64,000 bases of DNA. Source: Scyliorhinus canicula. Taxonomy: Eukaryota. A program made the translations under genes and the position numbers. Under the pieces are notes generated by a model. The model was not told the origin of the DNA, did no database searches, and was given only the letters and a program-made list of their open reading frames with translations. Each line of letters begins with the position of its first letter. Within the stretch, counting starts at the first letter, position 1. This document shows, one piece after another, positions 1 through 58,340 of this stretch. The DNA lies in NCBI RefSeq assembly GCF_902713615.1, contig NC_052175.1:7209941-7273940 (forward strand), in the 5' to 3' direction.

Positions 1-2045
1 TAACCAATCCTCTATCCATGCTACTACTTTACCCTTAATGCCATGCATCTTTATCTTCTGCAGCAACCTTTTGTGGGGCACCTTGTCAAAGGCTTTCTGG
101 AAATCCAGATATACCACATCCATCGGCTCCCCGTTATCTACTGCACTGGTAATGTCCTCAAAAAATTCCACTAAATTAGTTAGGCACGACCTGCCTTTTA
201 CGAACCCATGCTGCGTCTGCCCAATGGGACAATTTCTATCCAGATGCCTCGCAATTTCTTCCTTGATGATAGATTCCAGCATCTTCCCTATTACCGAAGT
301 TAAACTCACTGGCCTATAATTTCCTGCTTTCTGCCTACCTCCTTTTTTAAACAGTGGCGTCACGTTTGCTAATTTCCAATCCACCGGGACCACCCCAGAG
401 TCTAGTGATTTCGGTAAATTATCACTAGTGCATCTGCAATTTCCCTAGCCATCTCTTTTAGCACTCTGGGATGCATTCCATCAGGGCCAGGAGACTTGTC
501 TACCTTTAGCCCCATTAGCTTGCCCATCACTCCCTCCTTAGTGATAACAATCGTCTCAAGGTCCTCACCTGTCATAGCCTCATTTCTATCAGTCACTGGC
601 ATGTTATTTGTGTCTTCCACTGTGAAGACCGACCCAAAAAACCTGTTCAGTTCCTCAGCCAATTCCTCATTTCCCATTATTAAAACTCCCTTCTCATCCT
701 CTAAAGGACCAATATTTACCTTAGCCACTCTTTTTTGTCTTATATATTTGTAAAAACTTTTACTGTCTGTTTTTATATTCTGGGCAAGTTTACTCTCATA
801 CTCTATCTTACTCTTCTTTATAGCTTTTTTAGTAGCTTTCTGTTGCCCCCTAAAGATTTCCCAGTCCTCTAATCTCCCAGCAATCTTTGCCACTTTATAT
901 GCTTTTTCCTTCAATTTGATACTCTCCCTTATTTCCTTAGATATCCACGGTCGATTTTCCCTCTTTCTTCCGTCCTTCCTTTTTGTTGGTATAAACCTTT
1001 GCAGAGCACTGTGAAAAATCGCTTGGAAGGTTCTCCACTGTTCCTCAACTGTTCCACCATAAAGTCTTAGCTCCCAGTCTACCTTAGCTAGTTCTCTCAT
1101 CCCCTTGTAATCTCCTTTGTTTAAACACAAAACACTAGTATTTGATTTTACTTTCTCACCCTCCATCTGTATTTTAAATTCCACCATATTGTGATCGCTC
1201 CTTCCGAGAGGATCCCTAACTATGAGATCATGAATCAATCCTGTCTCATTACACAGGACAAGATCTAGGACCGCTTATTCCCTCGTAGGTTCCATTACAT
1301 ACTGTTCTAGGAAACTATCGCGGATACATTCTATAAACTCCTCCTCACGGTTGCCTTGACCGACCTGGTTAAACCAATCGACATGTAGATTAAAATCCCC
1401 CATGATAACTGCTGTACCATTTCTACATGCATCAGTTATTTCTTTGTTTATTGCCTGCCCCACCATCTCGTTACTATTTGGTGGCCGATAGACTACTCCT
1501 ATCAGTGACTTTTTCGCCTTACTATTCCTGATTTCCACCCAAATCGATTCAACCTTATCCTCCATAGCACCGATGTCATCCCTTACTATTGCCCGGATGT
1601 CATCCTTAAATAACAGAGCAACACCACCTCCCTTACCATCCACTCTGTCCTTCCGAATAGTTTGATACCCTCGGATATTTAACTCCCAGTCGTGACCATC
1701 CTTTAACCATGTTTCAGTAATGGCCACTAAATCATAGTCCTTCACGATGATTTGTGCCACCAACTCATTTACTTTATTCCGAACACTACGAGCATTCAGG
1801 TAAAGTACACTTATGTTGGTTTTTTTACCTCTGCTTTGAATCTTAACATCTCCAGTTTTATTCCTTTTGTTATTACTGGGCCTATTCACTGTGCTCCCCT
1901 CAGTCACTGTACCTTGTACTGTCGCCCTTATTGGTTTCTGACTATGTCTTCTCTGCCTTGCACTTTCCCCCTTACTTCCTTCTGTTTCTGTCCCTGTTTT
2001 ACTACCTTCCAACTTCCAGCATTGGTTCCCATCCCCCTGCCACAT
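1..2045 (-). pseudogene. CR1 family A ORF2 (APE plus start of RT), interrupted
   Basis: ORF pieces 1275-2045 and 402-1238. Premature TAA at about 1275, where copy 2 has CAA. Further frameshift near 400. Confidence 0.9.
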
Positions 2046-2992
2046 TAGTTTAAACCCTCCCCAACAGCTCTAGAAAACACCCCCCCTAGGATATCGGTTC
2101 CAGTCCTGCCCAAGTGCAGACCGTCCGGTTTGTACTGGTCCCACCTCCCCCAGAACCGGTCCCAATGCCCCAGGAATTTGAATCCCTCCCTCTTGCACCA
2201 TCTCTCGAGCCACGCATTCATCCTATCTATCCTGACATTCCTACTCTGACTAGCTCGTGGCACTGGTAGCAATCCTGAGATTATTACCTTTGAGGTCCTA
2301 CTTTTTAGTTTAACTCCTAAATCCCTGAATTCCGCTTGTAGGACCTCATCCCGTTTTTTACCTATATCGTTGGTGCCTATGTGCACCACGACAGCTGGCT
2401 GTTCACCCTCCCCCCCTAGAATGTCCTGCAGCCGCTCCGAGACATCCTTGACCCTTGCACCAGGGAGGCAACATACCATCCTGGAGTCTCGATTGCGTCC
2501 ACAGAACCGCCTGTCTATTCCCCTTACGATCGAGTCCCCTATCACTATAGCCCTGCCATTTTTCTTCCTGCCCTGCTGTGCAGCAGAGCCAGCCACGGTG
2601 CCATGAACCTGGCTGCTGCTGCCTTCCCCTGGTGAGCCATCTCCCTCAACAGTATCCAAAGCGGTATATCTGTTTTGCAGGGAGATGACCGCAGGGGACA
2701 CCTGCACTGCCTTCCTACTCTTGCTCTTTCTTTTGGTCACCCATTTTCTATCTCCCTCAGTAACCTTCACCTGCGGTGTGACCAACTCGCTAAACGTGCT
2801 ATCCACGATCTCCTCAGCATCGCGGATGCTCCAAAGTGAGTCCATCCGCAGCTCCAGAGCCGTCAAGCGGTCTAACAAGAGCTGCAACTGAACACACTTC
2901 TTGCACGTGAAGGAGCCAGGGACAGTGGACGTGTCCCTGAGCTCCCACATCGCACACGAGGAGCATGACACGGGTCTGGGAACTCCTGCCAT
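2045..2992 (-). CDS. CR1 ORF1p (CxxC...CxxC zinc finger, leucine zipper, SGNH esterase), 315 aa, intact
   Basis: CSSC and CKKC pairs, LQLLLDRLTALELRMDSL heptads, then GDS, HIGTND and DGLH esterase blocks. Confidence 0.9.
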   Translation of the reverse strand: MAGVPRPVSCSSCAMWELRDTSTVPGSFTCKKCVQLQLLLDRLTALELRMDSLWSIRDAEEIVDSTFSELVTPQVKVTEGDRKWVTKRKSKSRKAVQVSPAVISLQNRYTALDTVEGDGSPGEGSSSQVHGTVAGSAAQQGRKKNGRAIVIGDSIVRGIDRRFCGRNRDSRMVCCLPGARVKDVSERLQDILGGEGEQPAVVVHIGTNDIGKKRDEVLQAEFRDLGVKLKSRTSKVIISGLLPVPRASQSRNVRIDRMNAWLERWCKREGFKFLGHWDRFWGRWDQYKPDGLHLGRTGTDILGGVFSRAVGEGLN

Positions 2993-3130
2993 GTCTTAAA
3001 CCCTTGGTAAACTTAAACAACTACAATTTCAAAATAAAAATAAGTAAATTAGACAATGAAAAGAAAAAGAGAGACTACTTACCAGTCACTTACCAGGGTT
3101 AAAGAGCACCTCCTCACACTCTGCACCGAA

Positions 3131-3886
3131 TTACCTCACTGCACCAAATTACCAAATTTGAATCCTCCACTCTGTACGAGTCTCACTCCGGATGAGTCTC
3201 CTGGAAAGTGCTTGCTTACTTTGTGCGCAGTCTCTCTGACTTTTATACAGACCTCAGCTAACCGATGACTCAAAAAAATACCTTAACTTCAAAGAGAAGA
3301 ATACAATGTGCCCCTAAACAGGCCTCAACAGGCCTCAGGTGATTGATAGATAACTGCCTCTCAGCAATTAGGGTGGGGGCAGCTTCAACCAATCAGACAC
3401 TAAGCTCCACACTGCACTTTTAACTGAAAAACAGCAGAATTAGATTTTCCACTTACCTTTGCTGATTTACCTCACTGCACCAAATTACCAAATTTCAATC
3501 CTCCACTCTGTACGAGTCTCACTCCGGATGAGTCTCCTGGAAAGTGCGTGCTTACTTTGTGCGCAGTCTCTCTGTCTTTTATACAGACCTCAGCTAACCG
3601 ATGACTCAAAAAAATACCTTAACTTCAAAGAGAAGAATACAATGTGCCCCTAAACAGGCCTCAACAGGCCTCAGGTGATTGATAGATAACTGCCTCTCAG
3701 CAATTATGGTGGGGGCAGCTTCAACCAATCAGACACTAAGCTCCACACTGCACTTTTAACTGAAAAACAGCAGAATTAGATTTTCCACTTACCTTTGCTG
3801 ATTTACCTCACTGCACCAAATTACCAAATTTCAATCCTCCACTCTGTACGAGTCTCACTCCGGATGTGTCTCCTGGAAAGTGCTTG
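3131..3886 (-). repeat. Tandem 336-bp monomers (about 2.25 units) in the CR1 5' UTR
   Basis: aatcctccactctgtacgag recurs at 3161, 3497 and 3833 (period 336). Each full unit contains ccaatcag. Confidence 0.92.
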
Positions 3887-4903: not shown

Positions 4904-4978
4904 GGCGGACCTCTCTACGCTTCTCTGGATATTGCCGCATTGGAATTGAGATCACAAACGAAGGCGGGACGCAGATAA
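4904..4978 (+). CDS. Terminal cytoplasmic exon of an upstream receptor gene (GGPLYASLDIAALELRSQTKAGRR*)
   Basis: Acceptor ttcttagtttcag ends at 4903. Phase-0 frame contains YASL. AATAAA at 5050-5055. Clear paralog at 19299-19450. Confidence 0.6.
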   Translation, partial: GGPLYASLDIAALELRSQTKAGRR

Positions 4979-19298: not shown

Positions 19299-19358
19299 TC
19301 TTCGGGTCTCTACGCCTCCCTGGATTTGGCCGCATTGGAAATAAGGTCAATAAAGTAG
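19299..19358 (+). pseudogene. Terminal cytoplasmic exon paralogous to 4904-4978 (SSGLYASLDLAALEIRSIK*)
   Basis: Acceptor tttcccag ends at 19298. TAG at 19356-19358 aligns with AAG (Lys) in the 4904 copy. AATAAA at 19445-19450. Confidence 0.6.
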
Positions 19359-34633: not shown

Positions 34634-34697
34634 ATGCCGTCTGTATCACGGACAATGAGCGTCCTCAGTGTCTGTTCATTGTTTCATCTCTTCCAGG
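34634..34697 (+). CDS. Leader exon of the VJ-C1 receptor (MPSVSRTMSVLSVCSLFHLFQ)
   Basis: In-frame ATGs at 34634 and 34655. Phase-1 donor CAGG|GTGAG. The phase matches the V acceptor at 35651. Confidence 0.6.
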
Positions 34698-35651: not shown

Positions 35652-35987
35652 TTATTTTACCTCAGCCCATCGTGTCCCTGTCTCCGCCGGTTCAGACACT
35701 CCCTACCGGTAGTCTTGCTAAACTTAGCTGCCGAATTTGGAGCACAGTGGCTCAAACCGTCTTCTGGTACAAACAAAGGGAGAGAAACGATATGAAGTTG
35801 GTCTACACTACGGACAAGTATCTCTCAGCAAAGGACAGGTTTTCCAGCGAGATTCATGAGAAAGAGGGTAATTATTCACTGATCATTGCGAATGCCCAGA
35901 GGAATGATTCTGGAATATATTACTGTGCAACCCACAACTACAAACTGGGGCGAATATTCGCAAACGGCTCCAAGTTAATTATCACAG
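35652..35987 (+). CDS. V-set exon with germline-joined J-like segment
   Basis: Acceptor ttttgcccag. LSC, VFWYKQ, DRFS, YSLII and DSGIYYC motifs, then RIFANGSKLIIT. Phase-1 donor G|GTAAAG. Confidence 0.92.
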
Positions 35988-36078: not shown

Positions 36079-36384
36079 AGGGTTCCCCCAGCATATTCCT
36101 ACTTATCCCTACGCAGGATGTGATTCCCTCCATGGAATGGATTCCGTTGTTGTGTTTGGTCAGAGGCTTGAATCCCGATTCATTTCCCGTCCGCTGGAAC
36201 GTGGCTGGGCGGGACACCGAGGGACACAGCGCTTCCGCGACAATACAGCCAGACGCGACCTACGCCATCAGGAGTCACGCCAGCGTCTCGGTGGATTCTT
36301 GGAGGAGCGGAACTCCCTGTATTTGTGCCGTTCAAATCAACGCTAGTGAATTACTTCTCAGTGAAAGTGTGTCATCTCAGAGAG
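36079..36384 (+). CDS. C1-set exon
   Basis: Acceptor gattttag. GSPSIFLLIP...LLCLVRGLNPDSFPVRW...YAIRSHASVSVDSWRSGTPCICAV. Phase 1 at both ends, so the frame runs on from the V exon. Confidence 0.9.
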
Positions 36385-38070: not shown

Positions 38071-38181
38071 ATTCTTTATCTCCATTCTGTATTTTCACGC
38101 TTTCTGGTACTTTGGCAGCGCTACTCCTTCTTGGATTATTTTTTGTGGCCTTGAGAAGGATGTTCAGGAAGAGGCAGACAG
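38071..38181 (+). CDS. Transmembrane exon (DSLSPFCIFTLSGTLAALLLLGLFFVALRRMFRKRQT)
   Basis: Acceptor gcaattgcag, phase 1. About 23 uncharged residues followed by a basic stop-transfer stretch. Donor CAG|GTATCG. Confidence 0.8.
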
Positions 38182-41100
38182 GTATCGATTCTATAATTCC
38201 TCGGCGCTCTCCATCCAATCCTTCATCACTGGTTTGTTCATCATTTCAATCGCCTCAATGTGCAATTTATAATCTGTATAAAATGTTCTTTCTGGCAGTA
38301 ATAAGAACATAAGAACATAAGAACATTAGAACTAGGAGCAGGAGTAGGCCATCTGGCCCCTCGAGCCTGCTCCGCCATTCAATGAGATCATGGCTGATCT
38401 TTTGTGGACTCAGCTCCACTTTCCGGCCCGAACACCATAACCCTTAATCCCTTTATTCTTCAAAAAACTATCTATCTTTACCTTAAAAACATGTAATGAA
38501 GGAGCCTCAACTGCTTCACTGGGCAAGGAATTCCATAGATTCACAACCCTTTGGGTGAAGAAGTTCCTCCTAAACTCAGTTCTAAATCTACTTCCCCTTA
38601 TTTTGAGGCTATGCCCCCTAGTTCTGCTGTCACCCGCCAGTGGAAACAACCTGCCCGCATCTATCCTATCTATTCCCTTCATAATTTTAAATGTTTCTAT
38701 AAGATCCCCCCTCATCCTTCTAAATTCCAACGAGTACAGTCCCAGTCTACTCAACCTCTCCTCATAATCCAACCCCTTCAGCTCTGGGATTAACCTAGTG
38801 AATCTCCTCTGCACACCCTCCAGCGCCAGTACGTCCTTTCTCAAGTAAGGAGACCAAAACTGAACACAATACTCCAGGTGTGGCCGCACTAACACCTTAT
38901 ACAATTGCAACATAACCTCCCTAGTCTTAAACTCCATCCCTCTAGCAATGAAGGACATAATTCCATTTGCCTTCTTAATCACCTGTTGCACTTGTAAACC
39001 AACCTTCTGTGACTCATGCACTAGCACACCCAAGTCTCTCTGAACAGCGGCATGCTTTAATATTTTATCGTTTAAATAATAATCCCGTTTGCTGTTATTC
39101 CTACCAAAATGGATAACCTCACATTTGTCAACATTGTATTCCATCTGCCAGACCCGAGCCCATTCACTTAACCTATCCAAATCCCTCTGCCGACTTCCAG
39201 TATCCTCTGCACTTTTCGCTTTACCACTCATCTTAGTGTCATCTGCAAACTTGGACACATTGCCCTTGGTCCCCAACTCCAAATCATCAATGTAAATTGT
39301 GAACAATTGTGGGCCCAACACGGATCCCTGAGGGACACCACTAGCTACTGATTGCCAACCAGAGAAACACCCATTTATCCCAACTCTTTGCTTTCTATTA
39401 ATTAACCAATCCTCTATCCATGCTACTACTTTACCCTTAATGCCATGCATCTTTATCTTATGCAGCAACCTTTTGTGTGGCACCTTGTCAAAGGCTTTCT
39501 GGAAATCCAGATATACCACATCCATTGGCTCCCCGTTATCTACTGCACTGGTAATGTCCTCAAAGAATTCCACTAAATTAGTTAGGCACGACCTGACTTT
39601 TACGAACCCATGCTGCGTCTGCCCAATGGGACAATTTCTATCCAGATGCCTCGCAATTTCTTCCTTGATGATAGATTCCAGCATCTTCCCTGTTACCGAA
39701 GTTAAACTCACTGGCCTATAATTTCCTGCTTTCTGCCTACCTCCTTTTTTAAACAGTGGCGTCACGTTTGCTAATTTCCAATCCACCGGGACCACCCCAG
39801 AGTCTAGTGAATTTCGGTAAATTATCACTAGTGCATCTGCAATTTCCCATGCCATCTCTTTTAGCACTCTGGGATGCATTCCATCAGGGCCAGGAGACTT
39901 GTCTACCTTTAGCCCCATTAGCTTGCCAATCACTCCCTCCTTAGTGATAACAATCGTCTCAAGGTCCTCACCTGTCATAGCCTCATTTCTATCAGTCACT
40001 GGCATGTTATTTGTGTCTTCCACTGTGAAGACCGACCCAAAAAACCTGTTCAGTTCCTCAGCCATTTCCTCATTTCCCATTATTAAAACTCCCTTCTCAT
40101 CCTCGAAAGGACCAATATTTACCTTAGCCACTCTTTTTTGTCTTATATATTTGTAAAAACTTTTACTGTCTGTTTTTATATTCTGAGCAAGTTTACTCTC
40201 ATACTCTATCTTACTCTTCTTTATAGCTTTTTTTAGTAGCTTTCTGTTGCCCCCTAAAGATTTCCCAGTCCTCTAATCTCCCAGCAATCTTTGACACTTT
40301 ATATGCTTTTTCCTTCAATTTGATAATCTCCCTTATTTCCTTAGATATCCACGGTCGATTTTCCCTTTCTTCCGTCCTTCCTTTTTGTTGGTATAAACCT
40401 TTGCTGAGCACTGTGAAAAATCACTTGGAAGGTTCTCCACTGTTCCTGAACTGTTCCACCATAAAGTCTTAGCTCCCAGTCTACCTCAGCTAGTTCTTCT
40501 CTCATCCCCTTGTAATCTCCTTTGTTTAAACACAAAACACTAGTATTTGATTTTACTTTCTCACCCTCCATCTGTATTTTAGATTCCACCATATTGTGAT
40601 CGCTCCTTCCGCGAGGATCCCTAACTATGAGATCATGAATCAATCCTGTCTCATTACACAGGACAAGATCTAGGACCGCTTGTTCCCTCGTAGGTTCCAT
40701 TACATACTGTTCTAGGAAACTATCGCGGATACATTCTATAAACTCCTCCTCACGGTTGCCTTGACCGACCTGGTTAAACCAATCGACATGTAGATTAAAA
40801 TCCCCCATGATAACTGCTGTACCATTTCTACATGCATCAGTTATTTCTTTGTTTATTGCCTGCCCCACCATCTCGTTACTATTTGGTGGCCGATACACTA
40901 CTCCTATCAGTGACTTTTTCGCCTTACTATTCCTGATTTCCACCCAAATGGATTCAACCTTATCCTCCATAGCACCGATGTCATCCCTTACTATTGCCCG
41001 GATGTCATCCTTAAATAACAGAGCAACACCACCTCCCTTACCATCCACTCTGTCCTTCCGAATAGTTTGGTACCCTCGGATATTTAACTCCCAGTCGTGA

Positions 41101-41436
41101 CCATCCTTTAACCATGTTTCAGTAATGGCCACTAAATCATAGTCCTTCACGATGATTTGTGCCACCAACTCATTTACTTTATTCCGAATACTACGAGCAT
41201 TCAGGTAAAGTACACTTATGTTGTTTTTTTTACCTCTGTTTTGAATCTTAACATCTCCAGTTTTATTCCTTTTGTTATTACTGTGCTCCCCTCAGTCACT
41301 GTACCTTGTACTGTCGCCCTTATGGATTTCTGACTATGTCTTCTCTGCCTTGCACTTGTCCCCTTACTTCCTTTTGTTTCTGTCCCTGTTTTACTACCTT
41401 CCAACTTCCAGCATTGGTTCCCATCCCCCTGCCACA

Positions 41437-42384
41437 TTAGTTTAAACCCTCCCCAACAGCTCTAGAAAACACCCCCCCTAGGACATCGGTTCCAGTCCTG
41501 CCCAAGTGCAGACCGTCCGGTTTGTACTGGTCCCACCTCCCCCAGAACCGGTCCCAATGCCCCAGGAATTTGAATCCCTCCCTCTTGCACCATCTCTCGA
41601 ACCACGCATTCATCCTATCTATCCTGACATTCCTACTCTGACTAGCTCGTGGCACTGGTCGCAATCCTGAGATTACTACCTTTGAGGTCCTACTTTTTAG
41701 TTTAACTCCTAACTCCCTGAATTCCGCTTGTAGGACCTCATCCCGTTTTTTACCTATATCGTTGGTGCCTATGTGCACCACGACAGCTGGCTGTTCACCC
41801 TCCCCCCCTAGAATGTCCTGCAGCCGCTCCGAGACATCCTTGACCCTTGCACCAGGGATGCAACATACCATCCTGGAGTCTCGATTGCGTCCACAGAACC
41901 GCCTGTCTATTCCCCTTACGATCGAGTCCCCTATCACTATAGCACTGCCATTTTTCTTCCTGCCCTGCTGTGCAGCAGAGCCAGCCACGGTGCCATGAAC
42001 CTGGCTGCTGCTGCCTTCCCCTGGTGAGCCATCTCCCTCAACAGTATCCAAAGCGGTATATCTGTTTTGCAGGGAGATGACCGCAGGGGACACCTGCACT
42101 GCCTTCCTACTCTTGCTCTTTCTTTTGGTCACCCATTTTCTATCTCCCTCAGTAACCTTCAGTAACTCAGTGACCAACTCGCTAAACGTGCTATCCACGA
42201 CCTCCTCAGCATCGCGGATGCTCCAAAGTGAGTCCATCCGCAGCTCCAGAGCCGTCAAGCGGTCTAACAAGAGCTGCAACTGAACACACTTCTTGCACGT
42301 GAAGGAGCCAGGGACAGTGGACGTGTCCCTGAGCTCCCACATCGCACACGAGGAGCATGACACGGGTCTGGGATCTCCTGCCAT
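41437..42384 (-). CDS. CR1 ORF1p, 315 aa, intact
   Basis: Almost identical to 2045-2992. Confidence 0.9.
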   Translation of the reverse strand: MAGDPRPVSCSSCAMWELRDTSTVPGSFTCKKCVQLQLLLDRLTALELRMDSLWSIRDAEEVVDSTFSELVTELLKVTEGDRKWVTKRKSKSRKAVQVSPAVISLQNRYTALDTVEGDGSPGEGSSSQVHGTVAGSAAQQGRKKNGSAIVIGDSIVRGIDRRFCGRNRDSRMVCCIPGARVKDVSERLQDILGGEGEQPAVVVHIGTNDIGKKRDEVLQAEFRELGVKLKSRTSKVVISGLRPVPRASQSRNVRIDRMNAWFERWCKREGFKFLGHWDRFWGRWDQYKPDGLHLGRTGTDVLGGVFSRAVGEGLN

Positions 42385-42522
42385 GTCTTAAACCCTTGGT
42401 AAACTTAAACAACTACAATTTCAAAATAAAAATAAGTAAATTAGACAATGAAAAGAAAAAGAGAGACTACTTACCAGTCACTTACCAGGGTTAAAGAGCA
42501 CCTCCTCACACTCTGCACCGAA

Positions 42523-43252
42523 TTACCTCACTGCACCAAATTACCAAATTTGAATCCTCCACTCTGTACGAGTCTCACTCCGGATGAGTCTCCTGGAAAG
42601 TGCTTGCTTACTTTGTGCGCAGTCTCTCTGTCTTTTATACAGACCTCAGCTAACCGATGACTCAAAAAAATACCTTAACTTCAAAGAGAAGAATACAATG
42701 TGCCCCTAAACAGGCCTCAACAGGCCTCAAGTGATTGCCAGATAACTGCCTCTCAGCAATTAGGGTGGGGGCAGCTTCAACCAATCAGACACTAAGCTCC
42801 ACACTGCACGTTTAACTGAAAAACAGCAGAATTAGATTTTCCACTTACCTTTGCTGATTTACCTCACTGCACCAAATTACCAAATTTCAATCCTCCACTC
42901 TGTACGAGTCTCACTCCGGATGAGTCTCCTGGAAAGTGCTTGCTTACTTTGTGCGCAGTCTCTCTGTCTTTTATACAGACCTCAGCTAACCGATGACTCA
43001 AAAAAATACCTTAACTTCAAAGAGAAGAATACAATGTGCCCCTAAACAGGCCTCAACAGGCCTCAAGTGATTGCCAGATAACTGCCTCTCAGCAATTAGG
43101 GTGGGGGCAGCTTCAACCAATCAGACACTAAGCTCCACACTGCACTTTTAACTGAAAAACAGCAGAATTAGATTTTCCACTGACCTTTGCTGATTTACCT
43201 CACTGCATCAAATTCAATCCTCCACTCTGTACGAGTCTCACTCCGGATGAGT
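42523..43252 (-). repeat. Tandem 5' UTR monomers (336 and 327 bp spacing)
   Basis: aatcctccactctg at 42553, 42889 and 43216. Confidence 0.9.
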
Positions 43253-43832
43253 GACGAACAGTGATGACGAACTGGCAGTCTCCAGATCACACCCGCAGAA
43301 TAAGGAGGTAAACGTATTAACTAATTGTTGTCATATTTAATCCAGGGTTTCATATAAATGTCACATGATCCGAGATGTCTTTGCACAGTCGCACGACAGC
43401 ACAAGAAAAACTAGGCTGGCATTTATTAAGATTTATTGAAGTTTGTCACAGGAATTTAAGTTGGTTACATGATTCGAGAAGCTTGACAGGGAGATATTAT
43501 TTTATTTGGTTGAGGGAATCCAGAACAAGGAGGCAATAATTAAACAATTGAGCCATTCAGAACAAGAGGTAAGGCCATAAAAGAAGAAAGGAAATCTAAA
43601 CCTGTCTCCAAAAAAAGGTTTTGAGTCTTGGGTGTCATTTGAAACGTTGGAACTGATGTTGCTAGATATTCACTTGCTAATGGACCGAAGTGTAATGGAA
43701 CGATGGTTGGTGGGCGGGGTCAGCCATGCACCATGAACTAGTGGAATGCATTTGGAAAGCCCAATGATCCTCTCCTGTCTCTCTAATGATGGCGTCGATT
43801 ATTTATTGCAATCTGTTTATTTTTCTCGGCAG

Positions 43833-43877
43833 ACAATATATGCTGACCTGGCCTTTAAACAGGATTCCAGACTCTGA
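43833..43877 (+). CDS. Terminal cytoplasmic exon TIYADLAFKQDSRL*
   Basis: Acceptor ttttctcggcag. Phase 0 matches the donor at 43308. Contains TxYxxL. AATAAA at 44313-44318. Confidence 0.7.
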   Translation, partial: TIYADLAFKQDSRL

Positions 43878-54125: not shown

Positions 54126-57100
54126 GAAAGTTACCTGCTGCAGATGCATCTGTCAAGGACAGTAATAGTTGAAGTGACACCTGCACAGTCCTTGTGGAGA
54201 GAAAGTACCGTCCTCACATTGAGGATGTGCTCCATCGTTTTATGTGGCACGACCATCGTGATAAATGGAATAGATATCGAGCAGATTGAGCAACTTGAGA
54301 CTGGGCTTTCATGAGGCTTTGTTGGCTATCAGCAGCAGCAGAATTGTATTCGAACACAATTTGCAACCTCATGTTTCGGCATATTCCCCACTCTGCCATT
54401 TCCCCAAGACAGGTGATCAACGCTGGTTAAATTAAGAGTGTATGAGAGTATGCCAGGAGCAACATCAGGCATACCGATGAATCTTCAACACAGGAAAACC
54501 TGTGTGCCAAACAGCAGAATGATCAAGTATTAGAGAGAGCAAAGCGTTTCCGCAACCAACTCACAAGGTTGAAGCTCCGATGTCCTGCCACATCCAGCCG
54601 TGAATGTAGTGGACAATTGAACAACTCACTGGAGGAGGCGGCTCTACAAATATTCCCTTCCTTAATGATGGAGAAGCTCAGCACATATGTGCGAAAGACA
54701 AGGCTGAGACATTCGCAACAATCTTCAGCCAGAGCAAATAATCCATTTGGGTCTCTTCCAGAGAAGGTCCCTAGCACCCTACGAGGGAACAAGCGGTCCA
54801 AGATCTTGTCCTGTGTAATGAGACAGGATTGATTCATGATCTCATAGTTATGGATCCTCTCGGAAGGAGCGATCACAATATGGTGGAATTTAAAATACAG
54901 ATGGAGGGTGAGAAAGTAAAATCAAATACTAGTGTTTTGTGTTTAAACAAAGGAAATTACAAGGGGATGAGAGAAGAACTAGCTAAGGTAGACTGGGAGC
55001 TAAGACTTTATGGTGGAACAGTTGAGGAACAGTGGATAACCTTCCAAGCGATTTTTCACAGTGCTCAGCAAAGGTTTATACCAACAAAAAGGAAAGACGG
55101 AAGAAAGAGGGAAAATCGACGGTGGATATCTAAGGAAATAAGGGAGAGTATCAAATTGAAGGAAACAACATATAAAGTGGCAAAGATTGCTGGGAGATTA
55201 GAGGTCTGGGAAATATTTAGGGGGCAACAGAAAGCTACTAAAAAAAGCGATAAAGAAGAGTAAGATAGAGTATGATAGTAAACTTGCTCAGAATATAAAA
55301 ACAGACAGTAAAAGTTTTTACAAATATATAAGACAAAAAAGAGTGGCTAAGGTAAATATTGGTCCTTTAGAGGATACGAAGGGAGTTTTAATAATGGGAA
55401 ATTAGGAAATGGCTGAGGAACTGAACAGGTTTTTTGGGTCGGTCTTCACAGTGGAAGACACAAATAACATGCCAGCGACTGATAGAAATGAGGCTATGAC
55501 AGGTGAGGACCTTGAGAGGATTGTTATCACTAAGGAGGGAGTGATGGGCAAGCTAATGGGGCTAAAGGTAGACAAGTCTCCTGGCCCTGATGGAATGCAT
55601 CCCAGAGTGCTAAAAGAGATGGCTAGGGAAATTGCAGATGCACTAGTGATAATTTACCGAAATTCACGAGACTCTGGGGTGGTCCCGGTGGATTGGAAAT
55701 TAGCAAACGTGACGCCACTGTTTAAAAAAGGAGGTAGGAAGACAGCAGGAAATTATAGGCCAGTGAGCTTAACTTCGGTAGTAGGGAAGATGCTGGAATC
55801 TATCATCAAGGATGAAATTGCGAGGCATCTGGATAGAAATTGTCCCATTGGGCAGACGCAGCATGGGTTCGTAAAGGGCAGGTCATGCCTAACTAATTTA
55901 GTGGAACTTTTTGAGGACATTACCAGTGCAGTAGGTAACGGGGAGCCGATGGATGTGGTATATCTGGATTTCCAGAAAGCCTTTGACAAGGTGCCGCACA
56001 AAAGGTTGCTGCATAAGATAATGATGCATGGCATTAAGGGTAAAGTAGTAGCATGGATAGAGGATTGGTTAATTAATAGAAAGCAAAGAGTTGGGATAAA
56101 TGGGTGTTTCTCTGGTTGGCAATCAGTAGCTAGTGGTGTCCCTCAGGGATCCGTGTTGGGCCCACAATTGGTCACAATTTACATAGATGATTTGGAGTTG
56201 GGGACCAAGGGCAATGTGTCCAAATTTGCAGATGGCACTACGATGAGTGGTCAAGCGAAAAGTGCAGAGGATACTGGAAGTCTGCAGACGGATTTGGATA
56301 CGTTAAGTGAATGGGCTAGGGTCTGGCAGATGGAATACAATGTTGACAAATGTGAGGTTATCAATTTTGGTAGGAATAACAGCAAACGGGATTATTATTT
56401 AAACGATAAAATATTAAAGCATGTCTCTGTTCAGAGAGTCTTGGGTGTGCTAGTGCATGAGTCACAGAAGGTTGGTTTACAAGTGCAACAGGTGATTAAG
56501 AAGGCAAATGCAATTTTGTCCTTCATTTCTAGAGGGATGGAGTTTGAGACTAGGGAGGTTATGTTGCAATTGTATAAGGTGTTAGTGCGGCCACACCTGG
56601 AGTATTGTGTTCAGTTTTGGTCTCCTTACTTGAGAAAGGACGTACTGGCGCTGGAGGGAGTGCAGTGGAGATTCACTAGGTTAATCCCAGATCTGAAGGG
56701 GTTGGATTATGAGGAGAGGTTGAGTTGACTGGGACTGTACTCGTTGGAATTTAGAAGGATGAGGGTGGGATCTTATAGAAACATTTATAATTATGAAGGG
56801 AATAGATATGATAGATTGGGACAGGTTGTGTCCACTGGCGTGTGACAGCAGAACTAGGGGACATAGCCTCAAAATAAGGGGTAGTAGATTTAGGACTGAG
56901 TTTAGGAGGAACTTCTTCACCCAAAGGGTTGTGAATCTACGGAATTCCTTGCCCAGTGAAGCAGTTGAGGCTCCTTCATTACATGTTTTTAAGGTAAAGG
57001 TAGATAGTTTTTTGAAGAATAAAGGGTTATGGTGTTTGGGCCGGAAAATGGAGCTGAGCCCACAAAAGATCAGCCATGATCTAATTGAATGGCGGAGCAG

Positions 57101-58340
57101 GCTCGAGGGGCCAGATGGCCTGCTCCTGCTCCTAGTTCTTATGTTCTTATGTTCTTATATTACAGATGTCAGTATTCAGCCAGTACGAATAGCTCCACGT
57201 GATATGAAGGCACTGTATATTGCAAATGCTTTGGGTCCTGATAATGTTGCGGCATTACTACTGAATACTTGTGCTCCAGAACATTCTGTACCCATTGTCA
57301 AGCTGTTCCATTACAGCTACAACCCTGGCATCCACCCGGAAATGTGGGAAATTACCCGCGTCTGTCCACTACAGAATAAAGAGGGCAAATCCAACCCATC
57401 CAGTTCCTACCCATTCGGTCAACTCTCCATCATCAGAAAAGCCGTGGTAGAAGTCATAAACAGTACTATCAAGCGGCACTTACTCTTCAATCACCTGCTC
57501 ATGAACGCTCAGTTTGTGTTCCGCCAGGGTCATAGCCTTGGTTCAATAATGGACAAAAGAATGCCAAAGGCGAGGTGAGAGTGACTGCCCTTGGCATCAG
57601 GGCAGCGTTTGACTGGGCATGGCATCAGAGAGCTCAAGCTAAACTGGAGTCAATGGGAATCAGAGGGGGAAAACTCTTTTGGTTTGAGTCATACCTGCCA
57701 CAAAGGAAAATGTTTGTGGTGGTTGGAGGTCCATCATCTCAGTTTAGGATATCACTGCAGGAGTTCATCAGGGTAGTGCCTTCGGCCCATTCATATTCAG
57801 CTGCTTCATCAATAACCTGGCGCCATCATAAGGTCAGAAGTGGGGGGTGTTTGCGGATGACTGTACAATGATCAGCACTATATGTTACTCCTCAGATAAT
57901 GAGGCAGTCTGTATCCATATGCAGCAAGACCTGGTCAATATTCGGGCTTGGGCTGAGAATTGGCAAGTTACATTTCTGCCACGCAAGTACCACACACTAA
58001 CCATCTCCGACAAGCGACAATCTGAGCACTGGTCCTTGGCATTCAATTGACATTACCATCGCCGAATCCTCCACGATCAACATTCCATGGGGTCACCGAT
58101 TAGCAGAAAATGAACGAGACTAGCCACATTAATACTATACTGTGGCTACCAGGGCTGGTAAAAGGCGAGGAATCCTCCGGCGAGTAACTCACCGCCTGAC
58201 CCCCCCCCCCCCCCAAAAAAAAAAAACCTGTGTCACCATCTACAAGGCACAAGTTAGGAGTCTAATGGAATACTCTCCACTTGCCGGGATGAGTGCAGCC
58301 CCAGCAACACTCAGGAAGTTCGATGCCGGAATGAAGCGAC
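54122..58340 (+). mobile_element. Old LINE ORF2 (CR1/L2 group, different family), split by a family A CR1
   Basis: The left part ends ggtccctagca (54776). The right part resumes ttacagatgtcag (57160) and carries degenerate RT motifs (QFVFRQG, AAFD, FADD). Confidence 0.7.
54777..57158 (+). mobile_element. CR1 family A, copy 3, 5'-truncated
   Basis: ORFs 54829-55263 and 55409-56728 match copy 2 ORF2. (TTCTTATG)n tail at 57137-57158. Confidence 0.93.

Follow-up and report, generated by a model that had tools for sequence, protein, structure and literature searches.

What becomes of a cell-surface receptor when a retrotransposon lands in the exon that links its membrane anchor to its signalling tail? 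This question is raised by a 64,000-nt stretch of the Scyliorhinus canicula genome (contig NC_052175.1, positions 7,209,941 to 7,273,940; hereafter the window), in which a CR1-type long interspersed nuclear element (LINE) lies within a gene for an antibody-like receptor. We propose that the LINE, antisense to the gene, inserted 4 nt into the 59-nt penultimate exon, with no loss of bases and no target-site duplication. Probably one member of a multigene receptor family has thereby lost its signalling tail, a reading to which we give a probability of about 75%.

The gene was laid out by tblastn with its best-matching homologue, Scyliorhinus torazame scyTo_0016627 (P0001, 302 amino acids), a protein 82-87% identical to the one studied here. 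Six exons were placed on the + strand (Table 1). All six are open, their splice sites are canonical and the hallmark residues of immunoglobulin (Ig) domains are kept, which agrees with the initial annotation of this DNA that the ectodomain and transmembrane (TM) exons are intact. The native acceptor of the first cytoplasmic exon, ttctggcag (cag at 38296-38298), is followed by a T at the exon start, 38299, and the LINE interrupts the exon shortly after. When 38299-38302 are joined to 43253-43307, they form an open exon of 59 nt that is entered in phase 1, reads VMTNSDDELAVSRSHPQNKE and continues in phase 0 into the last exon, which encodes TIYADL, the only tyrosine motif of the receptor. Across the rejoined junction, the predicted empty site reads ...ggcagTAATGACGAACAG....

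The rejoined exon was compared with the tails of seven homologues, one from S. torazame, three from Mustelus asterias and three from Cetorhinus maximus. Its 20 codons align to all of them gap-free, each homologue having exactly 20 codons there, and such a match is far beyond chance. The tail layout is the same in all seven; in the copy studied here the 59-nt exon is split. Identity to the S. torazame tail, GIMNSDDELAVSRSQHQNKE, extends to 15 of the 20 residues. On these alignments we take the split exon to be real, and the claim of the initial annotation that the flanks rejoin to an open exon without extra bases is borne out. The gene spans 9223 bp here, 4273 bp without the LINE and 4166 bp in S. 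torazame. The 4166-bp gene, whose product reads through the exon, has no room for the insert, which is absent there. The empty site in relatives was judged at the protein level. It had been expected to read TAATGACGAAC, and to the letter it does not: GIMN... in S. torazame implies GN-ATH-ATG-AAY. The substance of the expected reading stands, because there is no indel and the differences fall at positions that vary between the other species, as do, apart from the first codon, the other differences near the junction. Within the 64-kb window, a blastn search with both flanks and the V-C1 region for a paralogous empty site matched only the queries themselves.

Both edges of the insert can be placed almost to the base with the help of the other members of its family in the window, copies A (1-3886), B (54778-57161) and C (63748 to the window end), which with the insert make four. 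At the right, Tandem Repeats Finder (TRF) ends an array of 336 bp x 2.2 at 43252, and after ...GGATGAGT the third unit continues with GACGAAC here and with CTCCTGG in the other units and copy A. Because the sequence departs there from its own earlier units and from copy A, we set the right edge between 43252 and 43253. At the left, the insert ends in the octamer tail, (AAGAACAT)x3 from 38303, as in copies B and C; the AT at 38301-38302 can be assigned to exon or tail, which leaves this edge ambiguous by 2 nt (a 2-nt microhomology). The insert thus begins 4 nt inside the first cytoplasmic exon, where the initial annotation had put it. No target-site duplication was seen at the insert ends. The pair CAGTAAT (38296) and CAGTGAT (43259) was considered as one and would give a 46-nt exon in the wrong phase; it was rejected because homologues show AAC AGT GAT GAC GAA CTG (NSDDEL) to be ancestral coding sequence. 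The internal repeat GACGAAC...GACGAAC is part of the same ancestral coding sequence.

What would such a gene produce? Because 4.95 kb now separates acceptor from donor, the exon can no longer be defined, and the outcome to be expected would be exon skipping or a poison exon, with the tyrosine motif lost either way. Splice sites were scored with a rough donor matrix from general knowledge and with pyrimidine counts, not with MaxEntScan. From the native acceptor, the phase-1 G of the TM exon leads into GTA ATA AGA ACA TAA, or V-I-R-T-stop, and the product ends ...RKRQT-VIRT-stop after 269 amino acids from the Met at 34655, shared by the homologues, or 276 from the ATG at 34634. Skipping joins the TM exon to the last exon in a shifted frame, and the product (269 amino acids) ends ...RKRQT-DNIC-stop, its stop lying within the last exon. 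TIYADL is lost from both of these likely products. Recomputed in this way, the V-I-R-T-stop end, the frame shift on skipping and the loss of TIYADL are all as the initial annotation had them, and its length of 276 amino acids holds from the upstream ATG.

Both likely products would add four residues after the membrane-proximal RRMFRKRQT and then end. In the receptor made from this copy, we infer, the ectodomain is normal and the TM segment uncharged, but the signalling tail is missing. The TM sequence, FCIFTLSGTLAALLLLGLFFVAL, carries no charge and so no adaptor-pairing Lys or Arg; for this reason the product could not switch to adaptor-coupled activation. Skipping is the favoured route, as it places the stop in the last exon. 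On the + strand of the LINE, 38844 and 38877 are plausible donors; poly(A) signals appear only from 40082 onward. A message that joined the native acceptor to a cryptic LINE donor would carry an early stop and would probably be degraded.

A product of the skipped kind can be recognised among the gene models of a relative. M. asterias P0003, which NCBI lists as 'Ig heavy chain Mem5-like isoform X2', ends RNRQK-DTLRSPSLQ-stop. Exhaustive back-translation showed that DTLRSPSLQ after a phase-1 G can be encoded only as a shifted read of TLYARLAFN[E/D], the last exon of the receptor family. As its tail is the shifted last exon, the relative's gene models already contain the splice from TM exon to last exon. 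P0003 would be a predicted natural isoform formed by skipping of the 59-nt exon, with no tyrosine motif. For the S. canicula copy, a tailless decoy or no product at all is the reasonable reading of the predicted messages, in agreement with the initial annotation. It could further be supposed that the CR1 turned the family's optional tailless isoform into the only product, a dedicated decoy or dominant-negative partner in a paired-receptor family. We consider this unlikely; if true, it would represent a transposon-driven route from inhibitory receptor to decoy.

Several points weigh against the favoured reading. Some tail-bearing product is possible because two in-frame cryptic acceptors exist: the 350 nt that precede the donor at 43307 contain 24 AG sites, and TIYADL is kept without a stop only from those at 43250-51 and 43276-78. 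If either were used, the insertion would behave as a long intron and the inhibitory tail would be kept. The resulting exons are open, in frame and end at the good native donor, and the 17 nt upstream of the GAG at 43250-51 contain 10 pyrimidines, equal to the native acceptor; the initial annotation had foreseen that this weak GAG would restore the frame minus one residue, and the in-frame exon 43252-43307 agrees. However, GAG is used less often as an acceptor than any other triplet, the pyrimidine tract before the CAG at 43276-78 is poor (6/17) and this site leaves an exon of only 29 nt, the closer CAG at 43259-61 shifts the frame, and all cryptic sites face competition from the native acceptor at 38298, which is intact. 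We consider a retained tail quite improbable. Further points on the same side concern the comparison itself. In all eight relatives the first codon encodes Gly; here exon base 1 (38299) is T instead of G, which makes it Val, and the site is not letter-identical to those of the relatives. P0001 is the best match, yet its orthology within a large family is not proven. Lastly, we infer rather than observe the splice route used, the expression of the gene and whether the insert is fixed or polymorphic.

The insert could also be neutral, having hit a family member that had earlier become silent or redundant; the gene would then be an incipient pseudogene with no decoy role. Consistent with this, no protein with the V domain of this gene was found in a collection of 5.8 billion proteins, two tail positions (Gly to Val, and the Pro in SHPQN) depart from all relatives, and the element has had time to decay. 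The gene, in contrast, keeps six open exons, canonical splice sites and the Ig hallmark residues. A divergence of about 1% is too little for visible decay to be expected, and so it leaves both the neutral and the functional readings standing. We regard the neutral one as unlikely. That a LINE copy was misplaced by the assembly between the halves of an intact exon is scarcely credible: nothing specific speaks for it beyond the abundance of the family, with its four copies in the window, whereas the junctions are clean at both ends and the private substitutions, the indels and the 5' end point all differ from copy A. The Pro of SHPQN lies at 43284-43286; together with the Val of the first codon, it could reflect relaxed constraint after the insertion.

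The age of the insert bears on these readings. The initial annotation called it young, in part rightly: ORF1 (open reading frame 1) and the tail are intact, and with copy B as outgroup only 15 of 1364 sites (1.1%) carry substitutions private to the insert, against 5 in copy A. On the other hand, ORF2 is broken by three indels, namely deletions of 13 nt near 41284 and of 2 nt near 40367, the latter private with respect to both A and B, and an A7 run near 40234, which copy B shares and where the in-frame copy A has A6. With three frame-breaking indels, the element is dead. No nonsense substitution was seen in its open segments. The element would be old enough to have decayed, unless it was copied in trans from a source already broken. 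Relative to the species split the insertion would be recent, having arisen after the separation from the S. torazame lineage. A slow pace of evolution is reported for shark genomes (PMC8455134), and for this reason a divergence of 1%, uncalibrated as it is, may mean millions of years. The description of the insert as a 'recent allele' is unproven.

The insert is a CR1-type LINE with four CR1 features. On its minus strand, Pfam finds Exo_endo_phos (E=6.5e-13) and RVT_1 (E=2.6e-32), as in CR1-clade ORF2. ORF1 contains Lipase_GDSL_2 (E=2.4e-13), and its nearest Atlas clusters are chordate GDSL proteins; an SGNH/GDSL esterase domain in ORF1 is a criterion of the CR1 clade that Kapitonov and Jurka reportedly set out in 2003. 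The 3' end is a microsatellite with units of about 8 nt, not poly(A), and copies B and C share this tail. The C-terminal ...FFTQRVVNLWNSLP... presumably resembles chicken CR1. The likeness to the CR1 clade lies in the esterase ORF1, an ORF2 with apurinic-type endonuclease and reverse transcriptase, the 8-nt microsatellite tail and the abundance in the window; the differences are a 5' end made of 336-bp tandem monomers and an insertion site that is exonic, not intronic. CR1 LINEs, which dominate among such elements in sharks, make up 21.8% of the whale shark genome and lie mostly in introns (PMC8455134). The window itself is LINE-rich vertebrate DNA, in which blocks of strong GC skew mark the LINE copies. 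Copy A is 98.4% identical to the insert in substitutions over 3.8 kb. An Rfam scan of the element gave chance-level matches only.

With its ORFs on the minus strand, the element is antisense to the gene, as initially annotated, and the 5' monomers point to lower coordinates. The antisense direction claimed for its putative promoter fits this geometry: transcripts that ran on past the tail would cross the TM, C1 and V exons in antisense. The insert carries 2.2 monomer units (42523-43252) and copy A about 2.3 (3128-3886); within the third unit their start points differ by 26 nt. A CCAAT-box-like site, AACCAATCAG, has 5 matches in the window where 0.2 are expected, and 4 of the 5 are within the 336-bp monomers. 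ORF1 ends GGT TTA AAC TAA and thereby carries the heptamer T_TTA_AAC (41441-41447, minus strand); in copy A the -1 frame is open from this heptamer into the endonuclease.

The host gene is, judging from its exons, a non-rearranging VJ-C1-TM receptor of a shark multigene family whose public annotation names are inconsistent. Its architecture places V and the J-like strand together in a single exon, followed by one exon each for the C1-set domain and the TM segment, the cytoplasmic exon of 59 nt and a last exon with T[IL]YA[DR]L. In Pfam searches, the VJ exon matches V-set (E=3e-15) and the C1 exon matches C1-set (E=6e-7). The nearest solved structures in PDB are antibody light-chain and T-cell receptor V domains for the VJ exon, and Ig heavy-chain constant domains at 1e-17 for the C1 exon. 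The motif T-I-Y-A-D-L differs from the strict immunoreceptor tyrosine-based inhibitory motif (ITIM), (S/I/V/L)xYxx(I/V/L), by Thr at -2 and from the strict switch motif (ITSM), TxYxx[V/I], by Leu at +3. It would best be called ITIM/ITSM-like. SIRP-type receptors are V-C1 inhibitory receptors, and the present receptor is like them in having a V domain followed by a C1-set domain; its YADL-type motif also resembles, we assume, those of SIRP-alpha. With UrIg and UrIg2 of elasmobranchs (PMC12227049) it shares a germline-joined VJ domain followed by a C1-set domain. Those proteins have several C1 domains after VJ, whereas here we find one C1 exon, an uncharged TM segment and a short TxYxxL tail; the single C1 exon between the VJ and TM exons rules out identity with UrIg/UrIg2.

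Automatic names such as 'Ig heavy chain Mem5-like' have been given to relatives of the gene. The names 'kappa light chain-like' and 'lambda-1 light chain-like' on P0010 (Carcharodon) and P0002 (Cetorhinus) are misleading. In the P0010 model the TM exon is missing and C1 runs straight into the 59-nt exon, and the P0002 model ends after C1; these models represent either secreted isoforms or annotation errors. At the 5' end of the S. canicula gene, 7 codons separate the upstream in-frame ATG at 34634 from the conserved start Met that is common to all homologues. Because Cetorhinus models read ...SRTMSFLGVC through the same place, the stretch 34634-34654 is conserved as 5' untranslated region or as an alternative start.

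The event itself is an ordinary gene-breaking LINE insertion, expected background for a multigene family. L1 insertions in human disease genes show that LINEs in exons can abolish or truncate the product. The present case is alike in that a coding exon is hit, its splice sites are separated and a stop is introduced, and skipping or a poison exon is expected there as here. It differs in the element, which is of CR1 type, ends in an octamer tail instead of poly(A) and lacks a target-site duplication; in the host, a shark; and in the target, which belongs to a multigene family of immune receptors. The locus offers a base-exact example of CR1 in a shark exon, where reported CR1 proliferation is mostly intronic, and its target belongs to a barely studied family of antibody-like receptors. 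A polymorphic insert would provide a natural knock-out or tailless allele, useful for learning the function of the receptor. Unless the insertion proves polymorphic or expressed, its interest is modest.

Table 1. Exons of the receptor gene, parts of the inserted LINE and candidate splice signals, in window coordinates.
Feature	Positions	Strand	Evidence or remark
Leader exon (MSVLSVCSLFHLFQ, phase-1 donor)	34655..34697	+	tblastn of S. torazame P0001
Germline-joined VJ exon, V-set domain ending FANGSKLIIT	35652..35987	+	Pfam, PDB matches, tblastn
C1-set Ig domain exon	36079..36384	+	Pfam, PDB matches
TM exon, uncharged TM, ends RRMFRKRQT, phase-1 donor at 38181	38071..38181	+	
First cytoplasmic exon, 5' stub of 4 nt (TAAT), behind native acceptor ttctggcag	38299..38302	+	
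CR1-type LINE, 4950 bp, near full length, antisense to gene, without target-site duplication	38303..43252	-	
3' octamer microsatellite tail, (ATGTTCTT)x3 on element strand	38303..38326 (TRF: 38301-38332)	-	
TAA stop after V-I-R-T, inside octamer tail of LINE	38310..38312	+	
ORF2, reverse-transcriptase part, 620 open codons, out of frame with endonuclease part	38413..40272	-	RVT_1
ORF2, apurinic-type endonuclease part	40344..41291	-	Pfam Exo_endo_phos; frame cut off by the deletions near 41284 and 40367
ORF1, intact, 315 amino acids, N-terminal Cys-rich part and GDSL/SGNH esterase	41437..42384	-	Pfam
5' region of 336-bp tandem monomers, 2.2 units; each full unit carries AACCAATCAG	42523..43252	-	TRF
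Weak GAG cryptic acceptor made by element 5' end	AG 43250..43251	+	exon 43252-43307 in frame, one residue fewer
First cytoplasmic exon, remaining 55 nt ((M)TNSDDELAVSRSHPQNKE), donor GAG/gtaaac	43253..43307	+	
CAG cryptic acceptor	43259..43261	+	frame shifted, TIYADL lost
CAG cryptic acceptor	43276..43278	+	in frame, open, ten residues lost, 29-nt exon
Last exon, TIYADLAFKQDSRL + TGA, phase-0 acceptor	43833..43877	+	

Elsewhere in the window, two orphan-looking terminal exons (4904-4978 and 19299-19358) encode ...LYASLD[IL]AALE[LI]RS... behind good acceptors. These YASL exons were considered as relatives of the TIYADL exon and rejected, their DNA being unrelated. The one at 4904-4978 follows the 5' end of CR1 copy A after 1 kb.

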